Source: Monocercomonoides exilis PA203 (taxonomy: Eukaryota > Protista > Preaxostyla). From it: DNA of 64,000 bases. The translations under genes were made by a program, and so were the position numbers. The notes beneath the pieces are model-generated. The model had not been told where the DNA came from, ran no database searches, and worked only from the letters and a program-made list of their open reading frames with translations. Where the stretch lies: positions 1-64,000 of the forward strand of contig LSRY02000045.1 of NCBI GenBank assembly GCA_001643675.2. The letters are read 5' to 3'. Below, one piece after another: positions 3,101 through 36,802 of the stretch. Numbering within the stretch: position 1 is the stretch's first letter; each line of letters starts with the position of its first letter.

Positions 3101-3332
3101 TGATCGGGGTTCCTGTGTGGGCCAAAACGGCGGGGGATGCGATAGGAGCAATGAAAACTGCGATTGGGAGGGGTGCAGTGTGGTGACGAGGGATGCAGCA
3201 AAATTTTGTTTTTTCATCTCAACGGCAGTTCTGGCGGCTGTGGCAGCGCCAGCGCAAATACGGATGATTTTATTGGATGCTCTCCTTCAGATCTGGGATT
3301 TGCCGTTATTTCAGCCAGCAAAAATATTTCGA
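171..3332 (+). pseudogene. Heavily decayed member of the cysteine/beta-helix surface-receptor family (outer part of arm; mirrored at 14936-18230, minus)
   Basis: Only short broken ORFs. The right-arm copy still reads CGAAQQPCQF (family CG-x-PC motif, ORF 18045-18230). Other remnants include EGKTGWIFL and SLVSVGGVVSFQNVIFS. Confidence 0.5.
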
Positions 3333-4760
3333 CTCCAACTGCCCACTCGACACACTGAACAGCGTCGTTGAAATCGAAGAAAGAGAATTCGTCCCAATCA
3401 CACTCACTGTCTTCCCTCTCCCAACAACAGAAATCTTCTTTTCCCCAACACTGATCGTCGCCCCTTCGCTCACATGCCTCCCACCCAGCAACGTGATTGT
3501 GGAGCTCAGCTGCGCCATGCTCGACCCCACTGCATGCCCCACTGTCTTGCAAGGTGCTGCCTCACTCATCCCACACAGATTGTTTGCGTCATCTCCACTC
3601 ACTCCAACATAAATCGTTTTGTCCTTCAGCCAATCCTTCTTTTCTGTATGCTGATACACCCAATTGTTTCCGTTATAATATTGGTAGTACACTCTCGTAT
3701 CATTGCTATTCGTTGTGTACGATTCGTAGAATGGGTTAGCCGATGAAAAAAGATTGTTTCCATCATAAAAATGCACATCATGGCCATATGGAGTGGAATT
3801 ACTGCAACTGCAATCATGGAAGAAGAAGAAATAGCAATAAATGTTGTTGCTTGGAGCTATTTGTTGGTTTGGATCAAATCTCATTCCTCCGCCATATGAT
3901 AATGCGCTGCACGAAATAAACTGGAGGCTCCTCATTTTGAATGCAGCTGGAACATTGAAACAGCACATCCCTCCGCCACTAGTGCTTGAAAGTGAGCACG
4001 AAGTGAATAAACATTCAAACACACAAGCACTCTCCCCTTTGTCGTTTTCTGTTCCAATACAGGAAGATCCAGAAACATTAAAAGTTTGAAGATAAAGGCC
4101 TCCTCCATAACCACTTGCTTTGCATTTCTGAAATTCGCACCCACTGATCCTGACGCATGACGAAATCGAATAAATGTCAATTCCTCCGCCTTCGTAGTTC
4201 TGAGCTGTGCAAGCGTTGAACGAAGTATTCTCGACCGTAATGGAACATATTTCATATGCTGTTATTGCTCCTCCGCCATAATACGCGTAGCAGTCGTTGA
4301 ACGAGCAATGTTTTACAGAAAGTGTTCCCGATGAAAGACCGTATATATTGATTGCCCCTCCATTTGAAGCTCTGTCTTCATATTCATCATTTTCTCCAGT
4401 AGTTTTTGAGCCATTCCACACACACCAAGTGAACGAATTCGCCCCATCATCTGATATCTGCTGTCTCGCTGGTTTCGATGGATTCCCCTCACTCCCGCTG
4501 ACTGCAACATTCTGAGAGCGATAGCATCCGACAAATGAGGTGTTCGAGGCAGCCGAGGAAGATGAAGGGTTGTTAAGCAAAGGCAGAAGATTTTATAAAA
4601 GGAAATTGACTGAAGATGAAGAATCTTATTGCTTATCTGAGACGTTAGAAAAGACAAAAAGAGAGCGTGACGCAAGGGATATGACGAGCAATGGAAGAAT
4701 GGGGCTGAAGAAATGCAAAAAGAAGAGAAATGCGACTTTTCCTTCGAAAGCACTTTCTCC
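3306..4760 (-). pseudogene. Truncated N-terminal-domain fragment of Pmp-like/beta-helix surface receptor (424-codon open core)
   Basis: Motifs GGAI/GGGI/GGGL, FxxC and LCGMSEAAPCKT. The ORF starts at TTG, the upstream homologous segment (SHFSSFCISSAPF) is out of frame, and homology to the 612-aa paralog ends abruptly after SSGQLE. No signal peptide or TM. Confidence 0.8.
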
Positions 4761-6759
4761 TCTCTTTTATTTTTATCATTGCTGTTGAAAGGATTGTCAT
4801 TTTTGTCAAGATTTTATTGTTGAAAAAAATAATAAGACAGTTGGTTCAATTGAAAGGCATTGTCAGCACTTGTCAAATAATTTTTTTAATTCAAAGAGAA
4901 ATTGAGAGTTTCAAAAGCTAAATGCCAACGGCCAAAATGCGCATAAACTTTTCTTGAAAGACTCGTTTTGGAATCAAATTTATTGTTTTGCTTTTATTTT
5001 ATTTATTGAATATGAAAGTGAATGATATGATGATGTTTTCAAATGGGACGAAATTTTTTGCTTTATGAATTTTGTTCCACTCATTTCTTTCAAAGATTTT
5101 TCTCCACTTTTTTATATTTCTCATTCAATAGAGCACAGTAATGTCAGTTTTATGATTATACGATTGCAAAAAATTTTGGAACAAATCATTGAATTTTTCA
5201 TAAATGTAAGAATTCTGTCCCAAATGGTGAAAATTCTATTTTGTTCTTTTCTTTTTGTTTTTATCCAAATATTTGAAATAAGTATTGATTGAATGTTTGC
5301 AGCAAATCGAAATGAATAATTTTCATTGATTCGTTTCATTTTCACTTGATATTTTTTAAAAATACATTTATTTATAAAAATTTATTATTATTTTATATTC
5401 AATATTTCCATAAAAAAATCATAACTTTGAACAAATTTGTCTTTTGCTTTTATTTATTTTCGAAAAAGATAGTTATTTAAATAGCAACAGAACGTTTGTA
5501 ACACTTGGCCAGAATATCATTTCTTCAAACAAATCTTTTTTCACAATATTCAAACACTCATAAGTTCGCAGATGAGCCTTTTCACCGTTTATTATTCAGA
5601 AGAAATACAAATGAATTATTTTCATTAAAAAATGTTCTTATAACATTCGGTTTGTCGAATGAATGTTTCAAACAAAATAGGATTCGATATTCAATTTCTT
5701 TTCTCTTAAAATCAAAGATAATTTGAAATTTGATTTTCTCGTAAATTAGCAGATTCTTTTTTTCAACAAAATTCTCTTGACCCTTCACATGATAAAACTG
5801 TTATTGTCCATGTTGATGATATATTTATTCAGAATTGATTTCTCACCTCTTATCTTATCTTGTCTTGTCTTGTCTTGTTTATTTATTCAGTAATTTGATA
5901 GTCAAAAATCCAGTCTCATTCAAATAATCATTTATCATTGTTTTCATTATCGTTTGTTGATTTGAGATTTGGGTGATTCCTTTGTGGCATCACACTATTT
6001 CTATCATAAGAATTCATTTCGATAAATCAATTTGAAGATCATGAAGATGAAACCAAGCAGAACTATTGATGAGTTTCTATTTGTTTTCAGATTGTTGTCT
6101 TTCAGTTATTTTCAATGATTCAATAATTGATGATTTCAATCCACTGAACAATTCATTGCAATCTGTTTGACCCAATGATCGAATGTTGGTTATTATTGGA
6201 GAACAGAATTATCATTTTTGATTTCAAAAACACTCACCCATTTTCAAGAGTTAATCTCAAAATCCAATTCATTTTGACATTTGTTTTGAAATTTGAGGTT
6301 GTTCACGGACCATTTTTCATTTTTTTTTGTACAATGATTCAACAATTTATTTATCTTTTTGAATGAACTGAAACATCTTTTTCGAAAAAATGAAAAATTC
6401 TTTTAAATATTTTCTTGAAGGATCATTTGGAATTATATTAAAATCATCTTAATTGATCACTTGTTTTTTTGGAGTATTTTTTTTTCGAGTTTTTATTGTT
6501 TATTATCACTCAAATACAATGAAACACATAGGCCTTTGCGACAGACCGACTTTTTTCTCTGCTCGACAAGTCGACCGACAAGACAGTCACAAATATTTCT
6601 ATTTTATTTTATTCGAAAAATATATTTTTATATAACTTTTTTGAATTATATTCTGCTCGTTTTTTCAAAAATATATTTCTTATTGCATTTGATAATTAAC
6701 AACATTATTTAATATTTCATTTTTTTCGAATAATTACAAAAATTGCATTTTTAATGGGT

Positions 6760-6840
6760 TATCGACAGATCTTTGTCGAGATCAGTCTGTCGAAAGATCA
6801 GTCGGTAGAAAGATCAGTCGGTCGAGATCACTTTGTCGAA
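6760..6840. repeat. Subterminal short-repeat cluster of the hAT-like element (AGATCAGTCGGT / TGTCGA units)
   Basis: ATCGACAGATCTTTGTCGAGATCAGTCTGTCGAAAGATCAGTCGGTAGAAAGATCAGTCGGTCGAGATCACTTTGTCGAA. The related motif TCGACCGACA occurs at ~6571 and ~11626. Confidence 0.7.
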
Positions 6841-7075
6841 TGCATCTTCTTTTGAAAATGTCACTTCATTTCAGAAACAGACAATGATATCTTTTAATTT
6901 ATAATATCATTTAATGATTGGAAAATTTAAAGAATTTTACGTAAATGAAGAGATTGTCTGTTTTGCATATATTATTATTAGTCCAAAATCACATTTCGTT
7001 AAACACTTTATCTGCTTTCAGATATATGCGTTGTTGATGTTATTATTTTTGAAAATAGTTTAAGAAAATATTCCA

Positions 7076-8075
7076 TAGGGCTGTAATTTTATCTTGACCT
7101 TTTTTCTTTATCTTGACAATTTTCTTTTTGTTATGCTTTCAGCTATACACAAGCTTGTGATAAATAAAAAATAACCAGAAATGTTTGAAATGTTTTTATT
7201 TCCTTATTCTGTATTTTTTTCAATATTTCTTTTTTTAAATAAGATCGAGGATTATAATAATTTTATGTTCTGATCAATTACTTGCTGCTTTTCCAGCGAA
7301 TATTTTTTATCGGAAGTTTTAAGTTTTCATATCATAATACATCGTTTATTTTTATAAGTTGAACTTGTTTTAAACTTTCTCAACTTGTTTTTTAACACTT
7401 TTTCTCATTTCACACATTTTTTCAAAAACACGATTTAAAGGACAAATATGAATTTGTTTTGTAATTTATTGAAATGATAAATAAACATTATTATAATAAA
7501 AGATTCTTGTTTATTTAAATGATAAATTATTTGTATATGTTTGGTAATTTGAAACACAAAAATGATATACACATGCTTTTCAGTTCAAATTCTTGAAAAG
7601 TTCCTTTTCATTTCAATGCTTAATGCAAATAAACAATAAATAAGATTTTGAATATTTTTTCATTTAAATAAAATTTGACACAAACACTTGTTTATTAAAA
7701 AAATCGTGTTTTAAGCAAAAACAGTGAAATGAGAAAAAAAGGTCAAAAATTAAATTGAAAAAGTTAAAAACAAGTCAAAATAATAATATAGGAGTGAAGA
7801 ATTGTGATGCTATTGCTTAAAACGTTCAGTATGAAATATTCGTTTCACAGCCAGCAAGTCTTTGATCTGGGTCCTAAAATAAAAAAATTTAAAATATTAT
7901 TTGGTACATAAAAATATCAATTTTTTTCTACAGAATTCTGAAAATCATAAATATCAAGAAGTCTATTAATTTTGTTTTTGTTTTAAGCCTTTTCATAAAT
8001 CAAAAAAGCAAAAAATAAGTTTTAAAAAATAGGGTTGAGATAATAAATTGAGGTCAAGATAAAATATGCACCCTA
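7076..8075. mobile_element. 1-kb degenerate foldback/MITE-like element nested in the hAT element
   Basis: Imperfect 25-bp termini TAGGGCTGTAATTTTATCTTGACCT vs revcomp TAGGGTGCATATTTTATCTTGACCT. Inverted similarity continues internally (TTTTTCTCATTTCAC ~7400 / GTGAAATGAGAAAAA ~7724; AAAACACGATTT ~7425 / AAATCGTGTTTT ~7701; ACTTGCTG ~7280 / CAGCAAGT ~7852). Flanking 8-mers match only 5/8. Confidence 0.7.
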
Positions 8076-8473
8076 ATAATAAAATATATCAGTTTTGAAA
8101 ATAAACATTTAAATTTTGAAAACAAAAGGTTGACATGCGTAATAGGTTTGATGAAGTTCATTTTTTTTATAATTAAATACTATTAATAAAGAAAGAAGTT
8201 TGACAGAGTTGTTTGTGATACTGAAGGAAATTTGAAATTATTCGTGAAATTGTGTGCACAATAATTGCTATTTCAAGATGAAATATGAAACATTCAAAAT
8301 GATATCAAAGGAATGAGGGATACTTATGAGAAGAACAGAATTCAATCATAACTAAATAAAAATGAAAAGATAAAAAAGATACGAAAGATTTTTGAAGGAA
8401 AAAAGCTTACGTTTTCAAAAAAAGAAAGAAAAGAAGAAAATGTTGTATTGAAAATTTATATCATTGAAATCAT

Positions 8474-8900
8474 TTGATAGACAACCAGGAAGTCCACACA
8501 CTTACGCTTCAAGAGGTTTTCAGGGTAGAGGAAGGTGAACTCAGGCTAATGATAGCGTCATCGCAAAACAAATATCGCTGTTTTGCATTGGCCATTTCAC
8601 GAGCGCATAGCAAGGGATTCATGCACATAGATGCAAAGCCTAACAATACATTGACTCTGCCTGCGAAAATTTGCCCAACGTTGTCTCATTTAGCTTTGTT
8701 TGAACAATGTTCTTCTTCTTTTTCTTTTCATTCATCGATTTACCCCGGATTTATACGAGCAAAGTTTGGAACTGAGATTTTCATAGTCGGTTTTCTACAC
8801 AATTTCGATCTGATATGTCTGCCACAATGGGAGCAGAGATCCTAGCTCCTCACTCGTCATCTTGGTTCTTTCGATTCGTGGAATCAATGCTGGATTATAC
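8474..8900 (+). pseudogene. Decayed protein-kinase fragment carried inside the hAT element
   Basis: AISRAHSKGFMHIDAKPNNTL resembles kinase subdomain VIa/VIb (H-x-D-x-K-P-x-N). MGAEILAP follows in another frame (subdomain VIII-like). No full domain. Confidence 0.45.
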
Positions 8901-11555
8901 GATATTGCAAAATGCATTCTTCTATGCGTAGAAATGAATATCATTTGAGCTGAAAACTGGAAGTGTTTAGAACCGAAGAATTCAAATATAAAGATGCAAA
9001 GGCTGATTCAGGAGTCCAAGGGTGTGCTGCCAAACTGGCTGAGAAGCAAAGGCAATGAACAATGGATAAAAAGATGCATTAATGAATATGGAAAGCTCCT
9101 GGAGCATTTCTTCGATAAACTCATGCTCGCAAAGTCCATATTGACGATTGCCTATTCGTAGCCTTCGCAGATTATTCACGAGATGCTGTTTGACGCTGCG
9201 ATTCATTCTCTTCTTTCTGCAGTATCTGAGGCGATTGCAACTTATTCGTTATTGCAGCCAACAAGAGAAAACAAACTGTTGCTGAGTGAAGTGGAGTAAT
9301 TCATCGATTGTTGACTGACGTTCAACATATAGAAGGATATGGTAACAGAAGTGTCAGAATTCCGCTCGTTTCTGAGTCAAATAACATCTCAACAGAAACT
9401 CGAAGGCGGATATAATAAATACTGATTCTGAATCGAAATCTTCATCTTCATCTTCTTCTTTCCTAATTCAAATCAGCTCACATTTTCATGTTAATGTCTA
9501 TCCAAACGAATAAAATTAATGATACATGTTCATTCTTTAGCCATTTGTACTATTATCGAAATGGAAGAGATACAGCGTTTGAACAAAACATCTGACGAAT
9601 TTAATGTGAAGTCAACTTCAATCAACACTCTTGAAGTGGTTGTGTTTTATAAAAACATAGCAAGCAAAAAAGATAGAAAAGCTAATGAGTCAAAAGATGG
9701 CGATGGAATTATTGATGAGAACAGCAGATTTATCTGTATAAATTATATAAAAACATCTTATTCAAGAAATAGCTGAAGATGGAAAAAAAGATGAATTTAT
9801 ATGGAGAAAGAAAAAGAAAAGAAGAAAGAGAAAGAGAGAAAGAGAAAGAAAGAATGAGTATATAAAAACAGATGGATTTGGAAATTCAAGAATTTTTGTG
9901 GATACTGAACGGAGAAGGAGGAGCGGAAGAAAATGAGATATACGAAGAGAAAGAAGTTCCAAAGACTGTGCAAGTGATTCATTTCTCAGCGGGAAAGGCC
10001 AAGAACATTCTTCAGTATGAAAAGATCAAAAAGGCAGAAAAATAAAATTTCCAACCTGACGAACTCAATTCTCTTTATTTGATAAATGGAATATTTTCGA
10101 TTTTTGAAACATCCTGGACAGTTGTTGTTTTGTCACTTCTGACAAACAAAATTGAATTTCCAAAACATTCAAAATGATACATGCTTTATTTGCTTCATCT
10201 TCTGTACTTTCATCCGCACCATTGAAATGTGGCTCGCTTCCATCTTCTCAGCATTCAAAACAAATAAAGATCAAGTGAATACAAGCACATTCCAATCTGT
10301 ATTCGAAAGAGAATCAAGATGCTTCGCAACATGCTTTTTTCCGCACTCATTTTTCTCTCAAAACACCATTTTCACGTTCTTAATAAAAGGCCAAAAAAGA
10401 TTTTGCTTTGCTATCCAGTTACAGATGCTGACAGGCATTGGAACTCGACTGAAGGAAAAAGGAGGATATATTGTTCTGTTCGAGATGCATTTTTTCCCAT
10501 GCAGCAGAGAAGGTAACCTGGCTAAAGAATTGTCTCAATTGGAAACACGAATTGGAAGGACAAACAGAACATCAGCTTCTCGAAACAGCATTTAGTGTTA
10601 ATATTCTTTTCTCAATTCAAGTGATACCAATGCTCCGCTTTCTCCTCGCTCTTATGAACGCTCATCTCTCCCATCCTCAGATGAATCATTGAATCTGATA
10701 CCTTCATTTCCATTCACAGTGCTCCATCTCTCACACAATTTTTTCTTTTGCTGACTATTTGCACAGGAAATGGAAATATAACGTAATATGAAACAATTGA
10801 GCCGCTTTGAACAATTCCACTATTCTCAAAAGACCGCAGGAATCCTGTTCTGATTTTCTCCTTGCGAACGGAACCCGTTTCAATTTACATCTTTTGTTCC
10901 TTCGTTTTTTTTAAACAAGGACAAATTGTTGAAGCAAGAACTTCCGTTTATTGTTCCAACATTCTTTCTTGCAACTTATAAAAATCCAACGATAATGCAT
11001 TCCACATGTTCTTCCTATTTTTAAAAACAACAGCTTAACATCAATCCAACAACAGCCGCTCAAAATCAGATTTCCTCTATCGTTCACATATTTAGTTTCA
11101 TTGTTGGCCTCTTGCTTCAGTCGATTTAAAGTGGAAAAGATAGGTCATTAAATGATGCTGAAGGACAAAAAAAGACTTCATGAAATGAATATTGACAACA
11201 CAGCTTTATTTTGCTTGTTTTACATATTTTTGAAAATTCCAGCTGAATCTGAAAGTTATTTAAAATCAAATTATTGTTTTTGCATTTGATAATAATATTT
11301 GTCTTGTGTTTGAATGTGATTTTTATGAGTTATTGCAATACCTTGCACTGATAATATCTGTATTTTTTAACTGAATTAATAAGTATTTTGAGATTATTTG
11401 ATTGCATTTCACTGAAAAATGAGTTCTTGAAAAATCAAAACTTAACTTCTTGCGCATGAAATGTGTGTTAAAATAATTTGCAAAAGAAAAATTTTGCAAC
11501 TTCAAAAGTTAAAAGCGAAAACTGTTAAAAATACATTTCAAATAGCTAATTTCAG

Positions 11556-11603
<48 letters not shown>
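11556..11603 (+). repeat. A48 homopolymer near the right end of the hAT element
   Basis: Direct count of an uninterrupted A run. Confidence 0.95.
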
Positions 11604-11608
<5 letters not shown>

Positions 11609-11689
11609 GACACAGGTTTTTTTTTTCGACCGACACAATTCGCTAAATATTTCCTTGTCGCAAAGGCCTAGAAACACATATTAATGAAT

Positions 11690-22432: not shown

Positions 22433-23875
22433 AAAACGTTCAAAGAAGCTTTTTTTTGAATCATAAATATTGTATCAAAATCATTTGAATTTTTTGTTGA
22501 AAATTTATTTTTCGCAGCAAGATAATCTTTCTTTGATTTGAAAAGAGTTGAAAGGTTTTATCCAAATATTTTCAGAGCCATGTCTATTTTTCGAGGTGGA
22601 AGTATTTCATCATTAAACTCATTTGATTCGTATTATTTCGTGACAAACAACACAAAAGCATTGGAAAAGCATCACTAACATGAAATGCTCCTGAAATAAT
22701 AGAAAACTGAGGAGATGAAAGCATTTTTTTATTTTTATTCACAATTTTTTTTGAAAAATCTTTTGATGATTTTTATTTTCGTCACTGCATTCTTTTTCAA
22801 GCCCAAAAAGAAGGATTTTGTGAAACGAACTTGAAAAAAATGAGAAACAATTTTTTCAATAACGAACAGTTATTTTTTGATTTTTGAACTTTTTTCAGCA
22901 AAAATCGTTTTTGTTGAAAAGCTTCTTTTTCCAAAAAATACATTTTCATTCCACTTTCACAATCGAATATTCAGGCACATAGTTTCGATTTGTATCTTTT
23001 GAAGTATGCTTTTCATTTGTGCTTTTTATGAATGCTTAAACGAAGAAATCTTATTGCAACACTTTTCCTTCAAAAATGATTAAAAGCATTCATTTGGTAG
23101 ATGTCCTCCAATAATAAAAAAATAATACAAAAAATAATATAAAAAGATGAAAATACAAAACAAAAAATTCATTTGTTGTCAAATTTGGTGAAGTTGCTTT
23201 TCAAAAAATGAAAAATCAAACTAAAATGGTTAATGGCTTATAAAACTTTTCAAATAAAAAATAACAAGGAAATCCAATCAAATATACTCAACAATGAATA
23301 CTATTCCAAAAACAGTCTGGTGCGAAGTACATATTAACGGCCAATGCTAAAAGTGTGAAGTTGGATCAATAACAATTCTTGATTTCCAAAACAAAAATTC
23401 AAATCTCTCAAAAGCTCTCAAATCAATGCTGTATGCAAACACTACTAAACATGACAAAACTGATGTGCTCAATTTCTCAATATGCACACAAAATTCTCAA
23501 ACGAAAAGAAGTCAAATAAAATAAAATAAAAATAAAAACATTTTCCGAGTGGATGAAAATTCGCAATAATGCGAGAAAACTTAAAAAAAGACCAACGAAT
23601 CAAAAGATAAACCTAATAAACCATTGCTCGTGAGTCTCTTTCGTTTTGTTGCTGAGTGACTTTGTGTTGTTGAATCTATCGAACATTCATCATTTTGCAT
23701 TTTGTCTTTGTAAAAAGGAACAAATTTCTTCTTCTTTCTCTTCTTTTTTCTTCTTTTCCTTCTTTTTCTTCTTCAAGTTTTATCTTTTCTTCGGCTTTTC
23801 CCTCTTTTCCCGCGTTTCTTCTCTGAGCTGCTTTGAGTTGAATCCGATGCAGCGCAAAGACAGAACGCAGCGAGA

Positions 23876-26800: not shown

Positions 26801-29800
26801 ACACGAGTCAATCAGAATGCGGCTGTTCCAACTGGCTGCCTTCACAGCTGCTCCTTCCGAATGCTTCAGCTGCACATCCCTCACTTCACACAGAACCAAC
26901 TCAAACGGCGTGTCGCTGCTTTCATCGGCTGCCTTGTAAAATTCAGAATTAAACTCAAAATTATCCGATTCTTCATCGAAAAGAGAAGAAAGAGAAGAAA
27001 GAGGAGAAGAAAGAGGAGGCAGAAGAGCAAACAAGCATCCTTCTTCCACACTCACTTGGCTGATAGAAACTTCTCTCAGCACAAAAGACGCTGCCATTTC
27101 GGCTGCAAAGGCAGACGAGTGCGAAGAGAGCGAAGAGACGTTGCTCCGCTTCACTTCCACTTTGCACCCGCTTTCTGCAGAGAGCACACCGCAGCACTCG
27201 AAAACATGCTCTATGCAAATGTCTGCCAGCACAGCCACGCTGCCGCCAGACACAGAAATGAGAGAGTTCGCAGATGACTCGAAGGAATTGGGAGATTGAG
27301 AAGAAGAAGAAGATGATGATGAAGATGAAGATGATGAAGAATCGGAAGGTGTTATGAAAGAAACAGAACAATCTTCTATTCTCAGTCCGCTGGCTGTCAG
27401 AGACGACGACTCGCACTTGATGACATGAGCCGACTGCGAGGCATCGCCCGACACGACAAATAAAGATAGCTCTTTGAAGCAGACACCAATCAACTCCACA
27501 GCAGCACCAGAGCAGGCCTCAATGAACGAATTCCCTGCTTCTGGCTCAAATGAAGACAACGAAGAAGAAGAAGAAGAAGAAGAAGACTGAGCAAATTGCT
27601 TTGCTCCAAATGCTTCTGCTGATGGCTGCTGCCTCGATGCCTGCAAGCGGATGGCCGAGAACGAAACATTGCTCAAACACAAACAATGACTCTCAACACA
27701 AATTACAGTATTTGCCAGCTGCGCCGGCTCTTCTGACGTGATTGTGCAGTCGCCCAGCGTCAGATTTCCGCTCCTCACGCCAAAGACAGAGCGATGTGGC
27801 GAAACGAAGCTGGGGCCGAAGACGATGTCCATCCCCAAAATGCTGCACTCCTCAGACGAAGACACCACACAATCCGCACTTCCATCGGTCTGAGCGATTT
27901 TGCAGTTGAACTCAAAAACAGCTGGGCTGCCTCCGACTGTCTGCACTGTCGCTGATGAAATGGCTGTCTCAGTTGAAACAGCTGCCTTCTTCACCACCAG
28001 CACGTTCTGGTACGGCTCGTCGTTCAGATGCCGCACAGCCTCGCTCAGCGTCTCACACGGGTCTTCCCTTCGCCCACAGTCCTTCTCGTTCTTCCCTTTC
28101 TCTCCTGACACAAATATCCGCTCTGACTTGTAGAACACAATAAATGGCACCAAATCAATCGGCTCCTCCTCCACTTTGTCCATCCCGAAGATGGCATTTT
28201 CTCTGTCAAAGGCCAACTCGCTGAAGTCCATCACAAACAGCGCCTCGTTGATCTGCTCAGCAATCGATCGGCAGACAATGTAAAGATCCTTCGCCACACT
28301 CGCTCTGTTCAAAGAAAACCGAATCAGCCGAAATTTGATTGGAAGCGCCTTCGCTTTCTCCGAAGACGGAGCATCTGAATCTTCTGGATCGTCCAGGCAG
28401 CTCAATGCAATTGCGCCTCCTCTGCCTTCACTCGTTGAGCACGCACATGTCACAAAAGACGACAGATTCGCCAGCACACTGCCTTCATTTGCCCAGCTGT
28501 CAGCCAGCCCACCCGCCTTCTCCTTCATCCACACACAAAACGCCCCTCCCAGCTGAGACTCGCTGTTGCAGTCACTGAATGTCGAGTTGTCCATCGTCAG
28601 CGCCACAGACAGCGCACTCTCACAAGAAATGATCGATGCCTTCGCATTTGTGCTGCGGATGAGATGCCACTGAAGATTCTCCAGTCTGATTTCGCTCGCT
28701 TCTTTGCTTGCTTTCGTTTCTTTGCCATTCCCTGATAAGACTGATTCCTCATCCCCCTTCTCTTCTGCATCGTCCACAGAAATAAACGATCCATCTGCAA
28801 AATTCAGAACATCAACAGAAAACGCGCTTGCAACAAAATGTGCAGCGGGTGCTGAAAGTCGGATGGCTGATGTCGCAAAGGAGAGCTCAGCCATTTTGGA
28901 CTCTTCAATCGAAAGTGTCCCAGACGAAACATGGAAAAGCACAAACGCAATGCCTTCTTCTGCTGTCTGCATCGCAAAGGAGCATTTGTTAAGCGTGGCT
29001 GTTCCTGTCTCAGTGAAAAGAAGTTCCTTTTGCGATGTTTCGAAAGACGAAGGCAGGCAGAAGTTGATGGAGGTGAATGTGAGCACAAGCTTGTTTGTGA
29101 GCACAGCCTCAGAAGGCTCAGAAAGAGATTGAATAGCTTTTCCCACATTGATTGTGCATTCATCTGAGGAAGGCTCATCAGAAGAGGAAGAAGAAGAATA
29201 ACCAGGAGAAGAAGGAACAGCTGGGCTTATTGAGCTGTTTGAAAGGTCCCACTCGTCTGAAATGGCAGCACTTGTGTTGATTTTGATTTCTCTGAACTGA
29301 ACTCCTTCTCTGAAATGCCTCATCCCTTCCCAAAACGACAGACAAGGCTCCGTTTCTGATCCGCACCCATGGATGTCTCTTCCACTCGACGACACAACAA
29401 CAGAAGTGTCTGTGTGCTCAAACAGCAGCTTGTCCAAAGATATGCCTTCTGTAAAGTTCACTTCATCTGCCCCAAAGAAAGCTGTTGTGTTCTTCCATTC
29501 AGTCCAATCAAACATCAACCTTCCAATGACAACTGAAGAATTCAAATCGGAGCTCAATATGAACACGTTTCTTCCAACAAATGCTTCATTCTCAGAAAAC
29601 ACCAAATCAGACAAAGAAAATCCATCGATCGAGTTGCAGCAGCTCAGATACAAAAACCCTCCTTTTCCGACAAACGTCGAGCAAGTGCAATGGCTAACAG
29701 AACTCAACTGCTCAGAATTTTCTCCCTTCAGACAGAAGCTTCCTTCTGCTCCAAGTTCAATTCTCATTCCTCCGCCTTCCTCACTCAACGCAGATGTCAA

Positions 29801-32800
29801 ATCATCTAAAGAGCAGTTCACAATTGACAGACGCGTCTCAAGCTGAATAGACCCAAACGAAGGCTGCTCGTCATACTCACTCACATGAAGAGAAGTGAAT
29901 TCACAGTTCTTGAAGCTTATTTCAGATGGCTGAGATTCTTGATTGGCCGATGATGAATAATCATCTTTTGTATCTGTTGTTGAATGAATCAAACTGAAAA
30001 GTGAACAAGATGAAAATGACAAATGCGTAAAGCTAACTCCCTCGAATGAAGCTTGGGCTGTTTGCGAAATCACAAAAGGCGTGACAGAAAATGAGGCAGA
30101 ATCATCATGGCATTGAGAAAGCTGCACAACCCCACCCAAAACGCTGATCAAATGCACGCAACTTGAAACATCTTGCGATTCTGAAGAAGTGAGGATGAAA
30201 GAGCACGATGAAAATTGGATGTTTCCTGTTTCTGTCGAAGAGGAAAACAACGAAGCACCTTCGGGTGTCTCAACAGCAAAAACAGAAGGAATATGAAAAT
30301 CGATCGAAGAAAACGAAAGAGCGGCTGTGGATGAAACAACACTCCCAGATGCAAACTGAACATTGGCGCTGATGTTAATCCCGCAGTTTTCTTTGCCAAA
30401 TGACACAACATTGACTGAGTTGAGCGAAATGTCATTTTCGATCGAGCCATTCGATTTCACAGTGATCACACGAAGTGGCTCATCTGCATTGCTCTCTGCA
30501 AGTCGATTGACAGAATAGTCAAGCGATTGGCACGGAACATATTTGTTCCCACAAAACACCTCGTTCTGCCCTGCTGGCGCCTCAACCAGAACAGATGCAC
30601 TCACAAAACCCTCCACAAAAATCATCAGATCAACCGCCTCGCTGAAATACCTCCTGTCAAACCCAACCAGCGCATTCGTTTTGTCCTCAAATTGTGTCGC
30701 AAATGCAAACAACTCAGAATTCACTCTCTTCCTCAGGTCATTCGCCACAATGAACATGTCTCTTCCCTGATGTGCCTTGTTTCCTCCAACACTTATCTCT
30801 GAAAATGAATATCGGTCATTGTTGTCTGTTGCACATGTCAAATAGATTCCTCCCCCGCATCCTTCAGAACTGCTGCAGATGCTGTCCGTCACTCCCACAT
30901 TCTTCATTTTCAGCTGTCCATCTACCCCTTTCAGCTCAAAAGACATCGCTCCTCCCTTTTTGCATCCTTCTGAGCCGAGCGTTTGGAACGTGCATCCAAC
31001 AACTTCTACTTCGTAGATGTTCTGAAGAGAGAATATCGAAGAACACGGATTCGATGCTCCATTGTTGATGCTGCTGAATGAAGAGGAGTTCAACAGAAGA
31101 ACAGCTGTTGATGAATCTCCTTCTCCTTCTCCTTCTCCTTCTTTTTCTCCTTCATTTTTTGGTGTTTCCACCTCCAACATTTCCATGAAAGATTTCTGCT
31201 CCAAATTGACTGATGCAAAATGGCATTCTTCAAACCACAAAACACCACCTGAACTGAATGCAAATGCAGAGCAGCTGAATGCCATCTCCTCCACCCACAC
31301 ATCACGCAGAGACACTTTCCCTTTCATTGCAGCAACCAACTTGAACTTCACAGGTTCATCTGTCTGCTTTTGGAATGAGCATTTCGTCAGACTCAGCCCA
31401 CTCCCTGCCAAATCTGTTGAATCATCGCATTCACTTGCAAACAGTACATTCTCATTGACCGAAACAGAACTCCCATCCAAAAAGGACGAAGGAATCGAAA
31501 TAAAAACATCTTCTATTGTGGCACTGCGAGAATTGACAAGCACCCCTTTTTGTGAATTGTTCAAAGTGTTCAGTTTGGAATGAATGGAAAGCGTTGAAGA
31601 AGGCGAATGCGAAGGCGAGTCAGAAAGTGAGTCCAAAGCATTTTGCGACGAGATTGTCAGCCCAGAAATGTCGTGTTCGTCTTCGATGTCTGTTGAGGAG
31701 GTTATGATTATTCGCTTGTTGGTGGCTTCTGTGCCAATATGCTTCATGGATGTCCAAAATGAGAAGCATGGAACATGAACACCACACCCAACTGAATCCA
31801 ATCCTTCAGAGCCAACGTTGATTGTGCTTCCTAAATAAGCAAATAGAAACACGGTCAGATCCGTATTTCCATATTTTGTGTCGTTGCCGACAAAGGCGTT
31901 GGTATTGCCAGCAAATTCAGAGAAATCAAAGTTGAACTTCGAAGTCTTGATCGAAGCATTCATTTCTGTGCAAGCGAGGAACATGTTCTCTCCCACTTTT
32001 GCTTCGTTTCCAGAAAAAGTCAGCTCTTCGAAGTTGAATTCTGCATCTCTTCCATTCAAGCAGAGGAACAAGAATCCGCCCTTTCCGCTGGCTTTGTTGC
32101 ATGCACAGCGGCTGATGCTGCTCTTCTTCAGAGTGAACGGCGCCTGAGACGAGGCAGACAGGCAAAGTGCTCCTCCTCCGAGGGATCCTTCAGAGAGACA
32201 TGCGGAGACAGAGCAGTTGGACAGAACAACACTCGCCGCGTGTTCAGGCGACAGAAGCGACGCTTTTCCAGTCTGAACAGCCGAAGAAGCTGAAGAGACT
32301 GAAGAGATCGAGTTGAATGTGCAGTTCAGGAATTTGAATGAATACTCTGAAAAATCTTTATCAGAAATATCCCCTCCTTCTCCTTCTGTTTGTTCTGTTT
32401 GTGCTCTTGAGGAAGCAGAAGCAGAATCAGACGTCGAATGAAGCAGAGAAGCCTCGTTTGAATGCACAATGTTGAAGAGGCAATCAGAATGCACACACAA
32501 ATTCTGAAATGTCGCCGTGTCAAAGGTGAAGTCGACTGAGTCGCTGATTTCCATCACAGCTGCACCAAAATTGACTGCCGAGTTTGAGCCGAAGCAGCAC
32601 GAGACAACAGACAGCACACCCGAAGACACCCCAACAAGAGGAAACGAGAAGGAAACAGCATCATCAGCATCACCAGCATCAGCATCACCAGCATCAGCAT
32701 CACCATTTGAATGGGCAAATGAAGAAGATGAATTCAAATAGAAATTGCATGATTCCAACGATGCTGCTCCACTTTGCGATGAAATCAGGAGCGTCATGCC

Positions 32801-35800
32801 ATTTGTGAATGAGGTTGGCACATTGAATGAAACATGAGAGATTTTCATTGTTTTCGTGTTTGTGATGGCAATTCCTGTTGCCTTTGGAATCGACTGAACA
32901 AAATCCACTTTGCACTCTTCGTTTTCTTCTGCGGATGTCAAAATCGAGTCAGAAAGATCGATTTCTTCTTTGATGAACGAAGACTCCTTCACTTTTATCG
33001 TCTGCATTTTATCTTCTTCTTCTTCTGCTGCTGCTGTTTCTTCTTCTTCTGTTTCTGGTGCTGCCTTTTGCTTCAGACTGAAATCGATCGTTTCACACGG
33101 ATCATCCGAGGGACCACAGCGGAACCAGTCGACACCTGTTTGGCTGGTTGGATCAGATGGGTCAGAATTGATGGCAGAAGAAGAAGAAGAAGAAGTGACA
33201 GAAGAAGAAGTGGTAGGAGCTTTGCCAAACACAAACACAACTGTGTTTCTGTATCGCATCGCATCCAGCAGATCAACATTATTCGACAACGTTGCACTTT
33301 CTGCGCCAAAGAACGAGTTGTCTGCGTCGAATGCACTCGAAAACACATCCACATATTTCGACAGATCGGCTGCCTGCGACAACTTCGCGCACTGAATGAA
33401 CACATCTCTGCCCAGCTCTGCCCGGTTGCCTGAGAAAGTGCACGACTCAAAGCAGAAGTCGCTCGAAGACCCATTCAGAATCAGATAGACGCCTCCTCCT
33501 TTGCCTTTGCTGCTGTCTTCATTGCTGCCTCTGCTGCTTCCAGCGCTCTCTTTGGCAGCACAGCTGCTGATGTTGCAGTTGATCATCTTCATCTCTTCTG
33601 AGCCACACACATCCCATCGCATCCCTCCTCCTTCAGTCGAACTGGCTCCCACACAATCTGTCAAGTTGCACTGCTCAAACACAACTGAGCCTGTCATCAA
33701 TGGACTTGTCGAAAAAAGTGCATTTGTGCCTTCGCTTCCTTTGATGTTGGCAAAACTGCACTGAGTGAACGAGGTCTGTGGATTGGCTGCTGAAGACGAT
33801 GAAGAAGAATCAGAAGAGGAGGAAGAAGAAATAGACTTAAATGCAAAGACAGCTGAGCTTCGACTGCTTGATGTGACATTCTGAATGTGAACAGAAGTCA
33901 ATTGGGAGCTGATTGAACCCTGCGACAGATCAAAGATGGGAGCAGAAATGAACAAAGGAGCAGAATGGCTGATGGTGCATTGGCTGATAACAAGCTTGGC
34001 ATCTGCTCTTTGATCAGATGAGATCAGAATGAGAGAAGATGAATAAGAATTAGACGATGGTGTTTCGTCCCATTGAAACGAGCAGTCACTCAATGTTAAT
34101 ATTCCATTTTGCAAAGAAACAAGCGATTGAAGCAGATGTTTCACTTCGTCAACCACCGACGGAGCAATTGAGAATGCAAGGCTATTCAATGAAGTCTCAT
34201 CAGAGGAGTGGAAAATGTAGCTGCTTTGACCAGAAACAGAAGATGGGATGCGAAGGTTGGCTTTTACAGATTCAGAAGGATCAGAAGAATATGATGATGA
34301 AAATGAAGATTTTGAAGCAGAATTTTGTTCTGGTGTTATTGAAACTGAGTTTAACAGATTTCCACTAGAAGTGACTGTTGAAGCACCTGAAATATAAACA
34401 GTTCTTTGTCCATTTGAATGAGAAGAAGAAGAAGAAGGACTTGCCAATCTGCCGAGTGCATAGTTCACAGTGGAGCATTTGCGACGGATTTCTCCACAGA
34501 AAAATATGTCTTCACCACTTGACTCAGATGTTGTATGTACGTTCATTGCAAAATAACCCTTCAGAAATATCCTCAAATCAATTGGATCACCTTGAAAATG
34601 ATTGAAATCGTCTCCAAAAATTGACATTTGAATTCCTTTCATCGATTCTGCTGTTGAAACAAAGCCAAATAGCGTTTCATTAACGCTTTCTTCAAAGTTT
34701 AAGCACACAAAATACAAATCACCTCCAAAACTTGCCTTATTTGAGCTGAAACTCGTGTTGAACACATAAAAATCTGTTGCTGTTGGCTTTGACCTACCGT
34801 AATTGGCATAAATAGCACCTCCTTTGCTGTTTGCAGGATTTGATTTGCACAAATTGAAAGAACAGTTGTTGATGCTGAGTGAAGAGGCAATATTCGAAAT
34901 TGAAGAATCACTTGATGATGATGTTAATTTCGCATTGAATGCAAGACATCCACCAGTAGCACAATCTCTGGAAGAAATGTTGTTGAATGAGCAGTTTTGA
35001 AGAGAAAGAGCCATATTTGATGAGCTGAGCTGAGTGAAAATAGGAGAATAAATTGACATGGAAGAAGAATACCATGAGGAAATATTATCGAACACACAAT
35101 CTCTGATTGAAGGATTTTCGCAAGAAGAGAAGAAAAAGAGAGAAAAGAAAGAAGATGATAGCTTAATATTAACTGCTGTTAGCTTTGACACAGAAAACTG
35201 CCCAGACTCAATCGAAAACAGCGCTGCAGACAGCTCTTTGTCTGCCGTTTGATTGATTTTGATGGAGTCAAACTGAGAATTGCTTTGACCAGAATTTGAG
35301 GAATAGAAAGTGTTGGGCTCATTGGATGAGTGAGCTGACGAGGAAAATGAAGAGGCACTTGTCATTCTCAGTATTCTTGTGTTGCTCGTTGAAAGCAGAA
35401 AACACAAATTCTGAACAACCAATTTGTTTCCGCTAACCATAAAAATAGCATTATTTGCAGCTGAGTTTCCAATCGTTGTTTTGTCTATTCCTGAGCCTGA
35501 TAATTCCAGAGGCTCTGTTGCAACCGTCAGATCAGCTATTGTTAAAAAGCCTTCTTCACAAAGCATCGGCATTAAATACGTTGTTCTCTGAGTTGAACGA
35601 GCATACTCAATTGTTTTGCATGGAAGGGTTCCTAATCCGCATCCCCATTCATCAACCCCAGAAGGCTTTATTTTCCTCTGCTCGTTCATTTTTGCAATAA
35701 GATAAGAAAAATCACCTTTTTCATTGATATAAAAACTCGTCCCTGTTGTAGTTGAATATGAATACGAAAAAATATAGTTACCAGGAGCATGGTAAGAATC

Positions 35801-36802
35801 AGGATCCGCTAAGTATATATCTTGTGGATCATTCACTGCTGAATTTTCTATGAAGTGGCAGCCAGTACAATTGTGTCTGTATACCTTATACATGTAAATT
35901 GCACCTCCTTTATCATCTGAGTGACATCTTTCAAAAACCGAGTTGCTGACATTAAGATCATAATTTGTTGATGTGTTATATCCATTAAAATATATTGCGC
36001 CTCCATATTTTCCTTTGCATCCTATCCAATCTTCATTAGATAATATTACGTGCTTCCATTTCTTATCTACACGGTCAGTTCGGGACAAGTGGAATTTTGA
36101 TGATTTTTCAGTTGATTGTGAATGAGTGCATTGAATATAGCGGTCGAAAGATGATCGAAAATCACAAGCCGGCGAGCTTGGCGACAGTCCGTGCACAACA
36201 GTTCCGTAGAAAACATCTGCACAACGGAAAAAAGTGTTGTTGTAAAGCACAGACGTGTTAACAGCGGATAAATGATCGGCCATTTGTAGCTCCTTGATGG
36301 GTTCTTCTTTTGCTGTAACATTCGAAAAGGCGCTTCCCTCAACGGACTCAAAATCTCCGATGCCTCCGCAGGCAAACGAAGAAGATTTCGAGGGGCAAAA
36401 AACCAAAGAATTAAATGAAGAAAATAAAACTGATGACCTTCCAGCTCCACCAGAAAGCCACGCCAAACTGCAAATTGAACGATTCCAATTTGCTTCAAAA
36501 ACAACGGAAAAATTAACGAAAAAGCATTGGCCATGTGATGTACAAGTTGGGTGCAAATTAATAGTTGGTTTTAATGAAGTAATACGGTCCAACGACAATA
36601 TTGAATTCTTGTCCACGGAGAAAAGTGCTGAGCATCCTCTTTCATCGAGCAACAAGTTCGTGCTTTCCAGGGAAGAATTTGTTAAAAGCACCATTGGCAA
36701 AAATTGCTGATTTGACTTAATTACAGTTTTTTCTTTACCAAACGGAACGAGTTGAGCAGCTACAGCATAACAAAGTGCAAATGCCAAAAAAGTTAACCGC
36801 AT
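23876..36802 (-). CDS. 4308-aa single-pass receptor-like protein: signal peptide, Pmp-like/parallel beta-helix ectodomain with seven CG-x-PC-type modules, TM helix, C-terminal degenerate (pseudo)kinase
   Basis: 12.9-kb uninterrupted ORF starting MRLTFLAFALCYAVAA. Repeated GGAI/GGFL...FSxNxA..G.D motifs. TM WLLYAFIGMIVLAVVLVLAIVAVLL followed by RARRRR (~25897-25805). Kinase C-lobe motifs RWAAPEQL, KSAVFSVGLVLHEMLSRKMPF and RPS; no HRD or DFG. Confidence 0.92.
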   Translation of the reverse strand: MRLTFLAFALCYAVAAQLVPFGKEKTVIKSNQQFLPMVLLTNSSLESTNLLLDERGCSALFSVDKNSILSLDRITSLKPTINLHPTCTSHGQCFFVNFSVVFEANWNRSICSLAWLSGGAGRSSVLFSSFNSLVFCPSKSSSFACGGIGDFESVEGSAFSNVTAKEEPIKELQMADHLSAVNTSVLYNNTFFRCADVFYGTVVHGLSPSSPACDFRSSFDRYIQCTHSQSTEKSSKFHLSRTDRVDKKWKHVILSNEDWIGCKGKYGGAIYFNGYNTSTNYDLNVSNSVFERCHSDDKGGAIYMYKVYRHNCTGCHFIENSAVNDPQDIYLADPDSYHAPGNYIFSYSYSTTTGTSFYINEKGDFSYLIAKMNEQRKIKPSGVDEWGCGLGTLPCKTIEYARSTQRTTYLMPMLCEEGFLTIADLTVATEPLELSGSGIDKTTIGNSAANNAIFMVSGNKLVVQNLCFLLSTSNTRILRMTSASSFSSSAHSSNEPNTFYSSNSGQSNSQFDSIKINQTADKELSAALFSIESGQFSVSKLTAVNIKLSSSFFSLFFFSSCENPSIRDCVFDNISSWYSSSMSIYSPIFTQLSSSNMALSLQNCSFNNISSRDCATGGCLAFNAKLTSSSSDSSISNIASSLSINNCSFNLCKSNPANSKGGAIYANYGRSKPTATDFYVFNTSFSSNKASFGGDLYFVCLNFEESVNETLFGFVSTAESMKGIQMSIFGDDFNHFQGDPIDLRIFLKGYFAMNVHTTSESSGEDIFFCGEIRRKCSTVNYALGRLASPSSSSSHSNGQRTVYISGASTVTSSGNLLNSVSITPEQNSASKSSFSSSYSSDPSESVKANLRIPSSVSGQSSYIFHSSDETSLNSLAFSIAPSVVDEVKHLLQSLVSLQNGILTLSDCSFQWDETPSSNSYSSSLILISSDQRADAKLVISQCTISHSAPLFISAPIFDLSQGSISSQLTSVHIQNVTSSSRSSAVFAFKSISSSSSSDSSSSSSAANPQTSFTQCSFANIKGSEGTNALFSTSPLMTGSVVFEQCNLTDCVGASSTEGGGMRWDVCGSEEMKMINCNISSCAAKESAGSSRGSNEDSSKGKGGGVYLILNGSSSDFCFESCTFSGNRAELGRDVFIQCAKLSQAADLSKYVDVFSSAFDADNSFFGAESATLSNNVDLLDAMRYRNTVVFVFGKAPTTSSSVTSSSSSSAINSDPSDPTSQTGVDWFRCGPSDDPCETIDFSLKQKAAPETEEEETAAAEEEEDKMQTIKVKESSFIKEEIDLSDSILTSAEENEECKVDFVQSIPKATGIAITNTKTMKISHVSFNVPTSFTNGMTLLISSQSGAASLESCNFYLNSSSSFAHSNGDADAGDADAGDADDAVSFSFPLVGVSSGVLSVVSCCFGSNSAVNFGAAVMEISDSVDFTFDTATFQNLCVHSDCLFNIVHSNEASLLHSTSDSASASSRAQTEQTEGEGGDISDKDFSEYSFKFLNCTFNSISSVSSASSAVQTGKASLLSPEHAASVVLSNCSVSACLSEGSLGGGALCLSASSQAPFTLKKSSISRCACNKASGKGGFLFLCLNGRDAEFNFEELTFSGNEAKVGENMFLACTEMNASIKTSKFNFDFSEFAGNTNAFVGNDTKYGNTDLTVFLFAYLGSTINVGSEGLDSVGCGVHVPCFSFWTSMKHIGTEATNKRIIITSSTDIEDEHDISGLTISSQNALDSLSDSPSHSPSSTLSIHSKLNTLNNSQKGVLVNSRSATIEDVFISIPSSFLDGSSVSVNENVLFASECDDSTDLAGSGLSLTKCSFQKQTDEPVKFKLVAAMKGKVSLRDVWVEEMAFSCSAFAFSSGGVLWFEECHFASVNLEQKSFMEMLEVETPKNEGEKEGEGEGEGDSSTAVLLLNSSSFSSINNGASNPCSSIFSLQNIYEVEVVGCTFQTLGSEGCKKGGAMSFELKGVDGQLKMKNVGVTDSICSSSEGCGGGIYLTCATDNNDRYSFSEISVGGNKAHQGRDMFIVANDLRKRVNSELFAFATQFEDKTNALVGFDRRYFSEAVDLMIFVEGFVSASVLVEAPAGQNEVFCGNKYVPCQSLDYSVNRLAESNADEPLRVITVKSNGSIENDISLNSVNVVSFGKENCGINISANVQFASGSVVSSTAALSFSSIDFHIPSVFAVETPEGASLFSSSTETGNIQFSSCSFILTSSESQDVSSCVHLISVLGGVVQLSQCHDDSASFSVTPFVISQTAQASFEGVSFTHLSFSSCSLFSLIHSTTDTKDDYSSSANQESQPSEISFKNCEFTSLHVSEYDEQPSFGSIQLETRLSIVNCSLDDLTSALSEEGGGMRIELGAEGSFCLKGENSEQLSSVSHCTCSTFVGKGGFLYLSCCNSIDGFSLSDLVFSENEAFVGRNVFILSSDLNSSVVIGRLMFDWTEWKNTTAFFGADEVNFTEGISLDKLLFEHTDTSVVVSSSGRDIHGCGSETEPCLSFWEGMRHFREGVQFREIKINTSAAISDEWDLSNSSISPAVPSSPGYSSSSSSDEPSSDECTINVGKAIQSLSEPSEAVLTNKLVLTFTSINFCLPSSFETSQKELLFTETGTATLNKCSFAMQTAEEGIAFVLFHVSSGTLSIEESKMAELSFATSAIRLSAPAAHFVASAFSVDVLNFADGSFISVDDAEEKGDEESVLSGNGKETKASKEASEIRLENLQWHLIRSTNAKASIISCESALSVALTMDNSTFSDCNSESQLGGAFCVWMKEKAGGLADSWANEGSVLANLSSFVTCACSTSEGRGGAIALSCLDDPEDSDAPSSEKAKALPIKFRLIRFSLNRASVAKDLYIVCRSIAEQINEALFVMDFSELAFDRENAIFGMDKVEEEPIDLVPFIVFYKSERIFVSGEKGKNEKDCGRREDPCETLSEAVRHLNDEPYQNVLVVKKAAVSTETAISSATVQTVGGSPAVFEFNCKIAQTDGSADCVVSSSEECSILGMDIVFGPSFVSPHRSVFGVRSGNLTLGDCTITSEEPAQLANTVICVESHCLCLSNVSFSAIRLQASRQQPSAEAFGAKQFAQSSSSSSSSSLSSFEPEAGNSFIEACSGAAVELIGVCFKELSLFVVSGDASQSAHVIKCESSSLTASGLRIEDCSVSFITPSDSSSSSSSSSSSSSSQSPNSFESSANSLISVSGGSVAVLADICIEHVFECCGVLSAESGCKVEVKRSNVSSLSSHSSAFAAEMAASFVLREVSISQVSVEEGCLFALLPPLSSPLSSLSSLFDEESDNFEFNSEFYKAADESSDTPFELVLCEVRDVQLKHSEGAAVKAASWNSRILIDSCVFSNISGQRERGSYLDLTSCGNVTIEKSSFWGVAEMRSQNGQNIRSKVNENEETGEETGFVWEWSSSSINFVESTVNINDTSFENFSQGAISLSNSTVTIEMGMFQNNNPFVSGYPSLRRNILCSDGSTLNVKSVKGGDGAKENSSFWVLDKDGTLNKGESEVPLSFFVPSIESVEKSENENKDIELKFIGTLLLPCSPVLRVLRIEGEITTIEDLAIKETKSIDENTLECLIDSSAKGKLENEYKVAVLLQFRDEHNNLIVQTNEFVINEAHPPPADENNTEANDQNKMTKTENGKGSVSWLLYAFIGMIVLAVVLVLAIVAVLLRARRRRQIEEKNRAKGMRYAYDIYGDGAEGGFEMQRMETAAIGMGLSGAAQTSEICSSQEALLRCEGSGRFGRLNGDGGDGGVDGFDCRLVAADGQCNTLELLLDAQQREEGQAKEKEREKWMGQREVANALSPFAPPVLNGAESNRSLCVSPGLAGAGAAVNGGSGGKGINRLNSVHSANSANSYNSYSSYNSNDSNNSNNSLNRMNGVNGVNGVGAEQGAETCLMVPYSDAQTTTSLSQLVEGMSCEHPFESVVVDLRDTVFARVHLAEEKKKKKMEKMENMGMGRGGIEGMEEEKEGEEEKKREKAKKEEVEAARVIFWVLNGVEHLLQSGREEELREFTSQSVVFTDGGAVALRLYSSTAGGAFEGEGGREGEREGGWGDEEGEDFVGFSVESCLSRGKEREKERGKGVLCRKSERPTNFFAQRWAAPEQLSGAVGQPNEKSAVFSVGLVLHEMLSRKMPFEDEDAFAAGVSIAAGRKPSEIGAEYSFLRPIVEQMLQKNPALRPSICALKKKIAGILPEAEELMKKGREGEGEEVKREGNGEGNGELGIVSISTSASILSIASSASSASSASSASSDGSDDSDDSAEVDALDDSDESVDSLSSSSSVSSFGSFASASSAQSDSECVSEADLKEESEDKSSCLA

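Follow-up and report, generated by a model that had tools for sequence, protein, structure and literature searches.

The first 64 kb of contig C42 (LSRY02000045.1) of the protist Monocercomonoides exilis PA203—hereafter, the window—harbor three long open reading frames (ORFs) that correspond to the membrane-distal domain, or head, of a family of giant receptor-like pseudokinases. Short-tract ectopic gene conversion is well supported in this family, and the three ORFs are probably truncated head copies within a recombining pool of receptor variants that they share with long-frame genes. The window belongs to the published, short-read-polished Oxford Nanopore Technologies (ONT) assembly of M. 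exilis PA203 (82.3 Mb, 101 contigs), and 46% of this genome consists of repeats (PMC6759080, PMC8767320). Our locus-level analysis covers 62 loci of ~4.3 kb each, while breakpoint classes were derived from 30 sampled loci; best-hit frames below 1100 aa were counted as short, as opposed to long-frame.

An original prediction, drawn from the letters of the window, had listed three receptor fragments devoid of a signal peptide, a transmembrane (TM) segment and a kinase domain. All three ORFs are present and their translations were obtained (Table 1), but fragments 1 and 2 are the same sequence, carried in opposite orientation by the identical arms of a palindrome, so that the window holds two independent fragments. 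Relative to the protein encoded by their closest full-length relative, a 4411-codon open frame (C41:578330-591562), fragments 1/2 cover residues 331-733 and fragment 3 residues 246-797, with 75-83% amino-acid identity over those stretches. Each fragment contains one CG..PC motif (CGMSEAAPC). Hydrophobicity scans revealed neither a signal peptide nor a TM-grade segment in the fragments (maximum Kyte-Doolittle 19-residue means of 1.1 and 1.7, as compared to 3.4 for the TM segment of the intact 4308-aa receptor gene in the window), a kinase match was absent from all three, and Pfam searches on them were blank. The prediction was therefore correct on this point: the fragments have none of what makes up a full receptor, be it a signal peptide, a series of modules, a TM segment or a kinase-like C-terminus, nor did tblastn detect any hidden receptor piece in the flanks of fragments 1/2. 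Their decayed ends and stop-free cores were likewise borne out, as a remnant of residues ~246-330, both frame-shifted and deletion-bearing, lies upstream of the fragment 1/2 core.

Conversion footprints in the head copies

Fragments 1 and 2 represent one class of head copies (class A) and fragment 3 another (class B). The 18-kb palindrome harboring the former has arms that are 100% complementary over 2180 nt, with both fragments inside this stretch, and 93-100% elsewhere. Further 100% copies of fragments 1/2 reside on C80. In all, 14 sites, arranged as seven head-to-head palindromes on C42 and C80, carry the class A unit along with no less than 3 kb of the flank downstream of it. Identity between palindrome loci amounts to 85-98%, while arm flanks within a palindrome differ by 0.000-0.028. 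These structures thus qualify as palindromic amplicons, having near-100% inverted arms, a unique spacer, and arms that are closer to each other than separate loci are.

Where sister arms differ, the differences are clustered. Between loci L004 and L005, 30 of 31 differences fall within 136 nt, with none in 2830 nt of flank (chance bound ~5e-25). A similar concentration was observed for L016/L023 (28 of 30 differences within 149 nt) and L024/L025 (50 of 51 within 248 nt), and the differences between L013 and L014 form three clusters of 18-35 nt each. Overall, these arm patches measure 20-250 nt, have sharp edges and are 15-35% divergent from the sister arm. The fragments are, therefore, certainly recipients of gene conversion.

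Longer tracts link the two fragment classes to each other and to long-frame genes. An exact 516-nt match (539 nt with at most one mismatch) between class A and fragment 3 is flanked by bins of only 52-90% identity, a mosaic stronger than the one originally claimed. Genome-wide, this haplotype was found only in fragment 3 and in the four class A arms (on C42 and C80), while the closest match beyond these (89%) is another class A copy. Since the haplotype is otherwise confined to class A arms, the transfer went from class A into fragment 3. Another tract of fragment 3, 171 nt in length, carries a single mismatch to a long-frame gene 354 kb away (locus L040, C42:375516-375686, with an open frame of 1887 aa), and its next best match in the genome reaches 88%. 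L040 additionally shares a 99% tract with a different fragment, L027. Fragments and long-frame genes have tracts of 197, 171, 171 and 156 nt in common with no more than one mismatch, in pairs that are otherwise 77-84% identical. Per pair compared, such tracts number 4 in 594 for fragments and long genes, and 2 in 351 for long genes among themselves.

As a GENECONV-like run-length permutation proved to be confounded by conserved blocks, we replaced it by near-identical tracts, the clustering of arm differences and the pairwise homoplasy index (PHI) test. The latter returned significant recombination in every subset (z -3 to -15). The arm patches and shared tracts bear out the segmental gene conversion suggested by the original prediction, long-frame genes included. 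A donor role of the fragments was confirmed only from fragment to fragment (class A into fragment 3), whereas for the tracts shared by fragments and long genes either partner may have been the source.

Conversion also bears on the state of the cores. Among the short head copies, 56 of 62 are open, and the pairwise ratio of non-synonymous to synonymous divergence (dN/dS) is 0.30 in all three comparisons, namely of class A copies, of class B copies and of 27 long-frame genes. For class A pairs taken from different palindromes, Jukes-Cantor distances of the core are 0.10-0.23 (mean dS 0.43), whereas the adjacent non-coding flank of most such pairs yields 0.065-0.125, the core reaching up to ~3x the flank. 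A core under purifying selection should diverge less than neutral flank, yet here it exceeds it, implying that the excess was imported. Instead of the dN/dS of ~1, the stops or frameshifts and the flank-level divergence expected of neutral pseudogenes, we thus observed mostly open cores with a dN/dS of 0.30, whose divergence lies above that of the flank in most class A pairs and is concentrated in patches, arguing that the fragments do not evolve as neutral pseudogenes.

Truncation classes, amplification and the parent receptors

Inspecting the 30 sampled loci revealed two copy classes; within each, the copies break at common points and their non-genic flanks are homologous to one another. In class A, homology is lost abruptly after '...GQLE', with eight unrelated codons preceding the stop; the start of class B corresponds to the upstream region of long genes of the L029 type, and its break falls mostly near residue 822. 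These common breakpoints and flanks show that the fragments descend from at least two ancestral truncations, which were later amplified with kilobases of non-genic flank. It is hence true that both fragments map to the same head region, as had been proposed for all of them, but mostly because of common descent from at least two amplified truncations, not because of repeated independent selection.

Nor are the fragments random gene pieces. Short frames account for 62 of the 99 best genomic hits of a head query, as compared to 4 of 86 for the next module (residues 734-1234; Fisher p = 4e-18) and 14 of 85 for a C-terminal query (p = 1e-10). Stops interrupt 6 of the 62 short head copies, but 7 of the 14 C-terminal ones (p = 0.0015). 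In the public annotation, no fewer than 149 models of 340-1070 aa are homologous to the head alone. Most of these short annotated homologues, at 51-60% identity, lie on C80 (1,962,414 bp) and on contigs of 566,112 bp and 172,346 bp, which points to additional head-fragment subfamilies that are more distantly related and form separate arrays.

As for the wider context of the palindrome, the first 20 kb of the window constitute an inverted paralogue, 91-100% identical, of C80:1,892,414-1,912,637. The 18-kb palindrome and 2.6 kb beyond it (171/343-6269, 11994-17970/18151) are paralogous to a stretch 50-70 kb from the C80 end. The right arm in the window equals the left arm on C80 (100% over 2 kb), whereas its identity to its own sister arm over that stretch is no more than 97%, a pattern that suggests either inter-locus exchange or a partly redundant assembly. 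The outer arms display a strong mirror-image GC skew (+0.35 at 1-2000, -0.42 at 16001-18000); these parts are of low complexity and G/C-strand-biased, and the ORFs within them look spurious. The class A upstream flank includes a dispersed, possibly MITE-like (miniature inverted-repeat transposable element) repeat of ~185 nt (13040-13223, mirrored in the left arm), of which at least 30 copies with 82-90% identity are spread over many contigs. A repeat of ~900 nt (18248-19158) with at least 25 copies of 78-85% identity, mostly on C80, C53 and C71 and often in inverted pairs, probably belongs to units of other fragment subfamilies. Finally, two long-frame head copies on C41 (C41:376993-378237(-) and C41:409381-410625(+); open frames of 2389 and 1635 aa) are 31 kb apart, inverted and equal in score, indicating that palindromic duplication reaches long genes, too.

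The parent family corresponds to the published 'tyrosine-kinase-like' (TKL) expansion (PMC6759080). This TKL/PTK family is the largest of M. exilis and overlaps with the 'unclassified repeats', which constitute 35% of the genome (PMC6759080, PMC8767320); the supplements of both papers hold no data on the present gene models. All database relatives of the fragments are MONOS_* proteins. Both the 4308-aa receptor and the 4411-aa C41 gene possess a TM segment and a kinase match confined to the C-lobe (profile positions ~155-259), with the catalytic half of the profile unmatched, so that the label 'pseudokinase' appears reasonable. The 4308-aa gene, convergent with fragment 3, belongs to a different subfamily and gave no tblastn match to the fragments at E<=1e-3. 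It had rightly been considered too divergent to be their recipient and is ruled out as an exchange partner; the short peptide alignment quoted between it and a fragment amounts to a weak resemblance that tblastn did not recover.

The head is the more variable part of the full-length genes (61-76% identity, as compared to 80-86% in the next module). A model of fragment 1/2, based on a 39-sequence alignment, predicts a right-handed parallel beta-helix at residues ~14-350 (predicted local distance difference test, pLDDT, mostly 70-95), with VIA Z of 15-19 against lyases, glycosidases and phage tailspikes. Foldseek of this model against PDB returned no significant match, and residues 1-1890 encoded by the C41 gene gave no Pfam match. 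It is by homology to this beta-helix head plus the first CG..PC motif of full-length members that the fragments are assigned to the head domain. Their last ~70 residues in the case of fragments 1/2, equivalent to the start of the next module with its CG..PC motif, are predicted to be disordered, meaning that these fragments end within a domain.

Further along the window, a lone piece of 56 residues (43483-43650 (-)) resembles the kinase C-lobe of the 4308-aa receptor (35% identity, E 5e-4) and is possibly a decayed C-terminal receptor fragment. Near the end, a 538-aa ORF without a Pfam match (62360-63976 (-)) is followed immediately downstream by an ORF that encodes a ubiquitin C-terminal hydrolase domain (PF00443, E 1.7e-11; 60942-62363 (-)).

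Table 1 Head-copy fragments, palindrome components, shared tracts and the intact receptor gene, with their positions in the window.
Feature	Position	Strand	Remarks
Left palindrome arm	~343-6269	.	Inverted repeat; carries fragment 1
Fragment 1, class A head-domain copy	3306-4580	-	424 codons; annotated MONOS_15951; homology to full-length genes only at 3333-4544
Spacer between arms	6270-11993	.	5.7 kb
Right palindrome arm	~11994-17970	.	Inverted repeat; carries fragment 2
Decayed 5' remnant, class A	13515-13723	+	~Residues 246-330 of full-length gene; frame-shifted, 57-nt deletion; mirror copy 4545-4753(-)
Fragment 2, mirror copy of fragment 1	13688-14962	+	100% identical to fragment 1; homology to full-length genes 13724-14935
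Exact 516-nt tract in class A	14327-14842	+	Mirror 3426-3941; also in both C80 arms; = 21578-22093
Fragment 3, class B head-domain copy	20594-22432	+	612 codons; homology to full-length genes 20711-22378 (residues 246-797)
171-nt tract in fragment 3	21101-21271	+	1 mismatch to long-frame gene L040 (C42:375516-375686), 354 kb away
Recipient copy of 516-nt tract in fragment 3	21578-22093	+	100% to 14327-14842
Intact 4308-aa receptor, different subfamily	23876-36802	-	Signal peptide, six CG..PC modules, TM ~residue 3642, kinase C-lobe only

A probable shared pool of head variants and its alternatives

The shared pool that we favor can be outlined as follows. The head was truncated at least twice, giving rise to class A and class B, and was then amplified with its flanks, mostly as head-to-head palindromes. 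Its coding cores are repeatedly overwritten by ectopic gene conversion in patches of ~20-500 nt; the donors include other fragments, and some tracts are held in common with long-frame members. Such overwriting keeps the cores open and lets their substitutions look like those of functional genes, even as the ends that lack homology decay. Exchange may well proceed both ways, the arrays acting as a reservoir of head variants for long-frame receptors on the same and on other contigs, and arm-to-arm conversion within each palindrome may either duplicate or erase each new patch. Going beyond this, it is conceivable, albeit clearly less probable than the shared pool itself, that the palindromic head-cassette arrays form a selected, many-to-many conversion reservoir that continually re-tiles the ligand-binding tips of some 100 giant receptor-pseudokinases in this commensal oxymonad. 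As an equally tentative extension, this reservoir might amount to a germline diversification without a single expression site, in which the palindromes would serve as a copy-or-erase buffer.

Several points weigh against a pool shared with long-frame genes. Tests of direction for the tracts common to fragments and long genes, involving L040 and the positional paralogue of fragment 3 on C80, settled no donor. No long-frame gene closely matches fragments 1/2, the highest identity being 83%. Approximately unbiased (AU) tests on the whole-core tree rejected none of a class A, a class B and a joint A+B clade (p 0.35, 0.27 and 0.10), so that the way in which fragments and full-length genes interleave there is only suggestive. 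Copying from selected genes could, as a passive side effect, have left the frames open and dN/dS at 0.3. Lastly, all tract boundaries derive from a single ONT assembly with short-read polishing, within highly repetitive sequence.

The original prediction had envisaged silent donor cassettes of the vlsE, msp2 or VSG type. As a dedicated system, analogous also to pilS/pilE, this would mean unexpressed, selected donors feeding patches one way into expressed receptors. Such a system would explain why only the variable head is archived, why fragments outnumber the ~30-40 long-frame genes of their subfamily, and why cores stay open as ends decay. It would also fit the tracts shared with long-frame genes, including the patchwork of L040 with its 99% matches to two different fragments, and the related haplotype (86% identity, roughly flank divergence) that the positional paralogue on C80 retains at the 171-nt tract of fragment 3, which weakly favors fragment 3 as the source. 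While arrays of truncated variable regions are indeed present, one-way transfer from unchanged donors is not what we found: the fragments themselves receive patches, at odds with a one-way archive. Given, moreover, that no single acceptor or expression site was identified among the dozens of long-frame genes, that the public annotation lists the fragments among its regular gene models, and that their shared coverage follows from amplifying at least two ancestral truncations, we consider a system of this kind unlikely. The opposite extreme would be functionless debris, that is, palindrome-amplified truncations that are young and act as passive sinks, overwritten from selected full-length genes. 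We give it a similarly low chance, and it fits less well than the shared pool. Conversion is mechanistically reciprocal in opportunity, with near-identical tracts about as frequent per pair between fragments and long genes (4 of 594) as among long genes (2 of 351); C-terminal fragments, which likewise have intact donors, are far more decayed than head copies; and the patchwork at L040 does not sit easily with transfer in one direction only. Debris would nonetheless be consistent with the common breakpoints and flanks, indicative of a few truncated ancestors, with a dN/dS equal to that of full-length genes and a core dS above the flank, as expected of imported variation, and with the missing signal peptide and the incomplete module, predicted to be disordered, at the end of fragments 1/2. 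A private-mutation test, too, gave no sign of selection on the fragments (41 changes, 0 stops vs 2.2 expected), although it was underpowered and not significant.

Less probable still are real short genes or exons, encoding head-domain proteins that stand alone or are spliced to other exons. The frames are open, some are annotated proteins (e.g., MONOS_15951), and class B retains the upstream region of L029-type long genes; RNA-seq runs contain 38-47% of the sampled words of 18600-24500, although DNA is a possible source of these words, which are not assigned to positions. In the parent receptors the domain is extracellular, whereas the short models are without a signal peptide or TM segment, the 5' part of class A is frame-shifted, and both classes stop within a module, a few codons past the loss of homology and with no splice donor evident at the 3' break of either class. 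A TTCTAAC...CAG motif upstream of class A that resembled a branch point plus acceptor turned out to be diverged coding sequence (FFNIS...). No downstream receptor exon was found near the fragments by tblastn, which speaks against exons of ordinary receptor genes. An artefact of assembly or polishing, finally, would require chimeric ONT reads combined with short reads mis-mapped between paralogues over ten Pilon rounds, and appears very improbable, even though the region sits at a contig start in a repeat-rich genome and the patches are comparable in size to short reads. At 15-35% off the sister arm, the patches are too divergent for mis-mapped reads to have been written onto an identical draft; the 5.7-kb spacer and the arm segments of 93-99% identity are unlike a zero-spacer fold-back; at least seven loci, 85-98% identical to each other, repeat this layout; and of the words sampled from the region around fragment 3, 49-69% are present in independent DNA runs of 2016 and 2022.

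Our results show that amplified head-domain copies, which recombine with receptor genes, make up a sizeable part of the 'unclassified repeats', and thereby explain this repeat class. They mark the head as the fast-changing and presumably ligand-facing part of the receptors, and patch donation between fragments and long genes provides a concrete, testable model. Should the reservoir role also hold true, cassette-style diversification would extend beyond pathogens that use one expression site to a many-acceptor receptor family of a commensal protist. To our knowledge, no surface-protein diversification system has been described in oxymonads. The terms 'gene conversion' and 'pseudogene' do not occur in PMC6759080, nor palindromes in PMC8767320, and a wider search of the literature available to us, combining Monocercomonoides with gene conversion, returned nothing relevant.

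Likeness to known recombining gene families

In terms of layout, the head copies resemble partial-copy archives. Several pathogens maintain such archives for conversion: Borrelia (vls/vlsE), Neisseria (pilS/pilE), Anaplasma (the 'functional pseudogenes' of msp2), Mycoplasma genitalium (MgPar) and Trypanosoma brucei (VSG mosaics). As in these systems, truncated copies limited to the variable surface part are arranged in arrays, cores are open while ends are non-functional, and short segmental conversion produces mosaics. M. exilis differs in that dozens of long-frame genes are potential acceptors, as opposed to a single expression site, in that conversion also overwrites the archive copies, and in that the protein in question is a receptor-like pseudokinase of a commensal protist. 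The likeness is drawn from DNA sequence; switching, silence and immune selection are properties of the systems to which we compare.

Conversion from pseudo-V genes in the chicken immunoglobulin loci is somatic, driven by AID and directed at a single acceptor. Those arrays, too, consist of truncated, leaderless yet open copies in both orientations near functional genes and donate short patches, whereas the evidence in M. exilis points to exchange of a germline-type, evolutionary kind. The amplicons of the primate Y chromosome, in turn, are palindromes with arm-to-arm gene conversion and share with the present ones arms identical over kilobases, a unique spacer, gene copies within the arms, and arms far closer to each other than separate loci are; here, however, the arms contain truncated gene heads in place of whole genes and take up ectopic patches from a large dispersed family.

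Plasmodium var, Giardia VSP and Babesia ves1 are multigene surface families that recombine without cassettes. With these, the receptor family has in common a many-to-many ectopic recombination among paralogues that is focused on an exposed domain, but it differs by a large, separately amplified population of head-only copies that outnumbers the long genes of its subfamily. Within M. exilis itself, the copies share their gene family and their repeat-rich surroundings with the TKL expansion (PMC6759080) and the PTK-overlapping repeats (PMC8767320).

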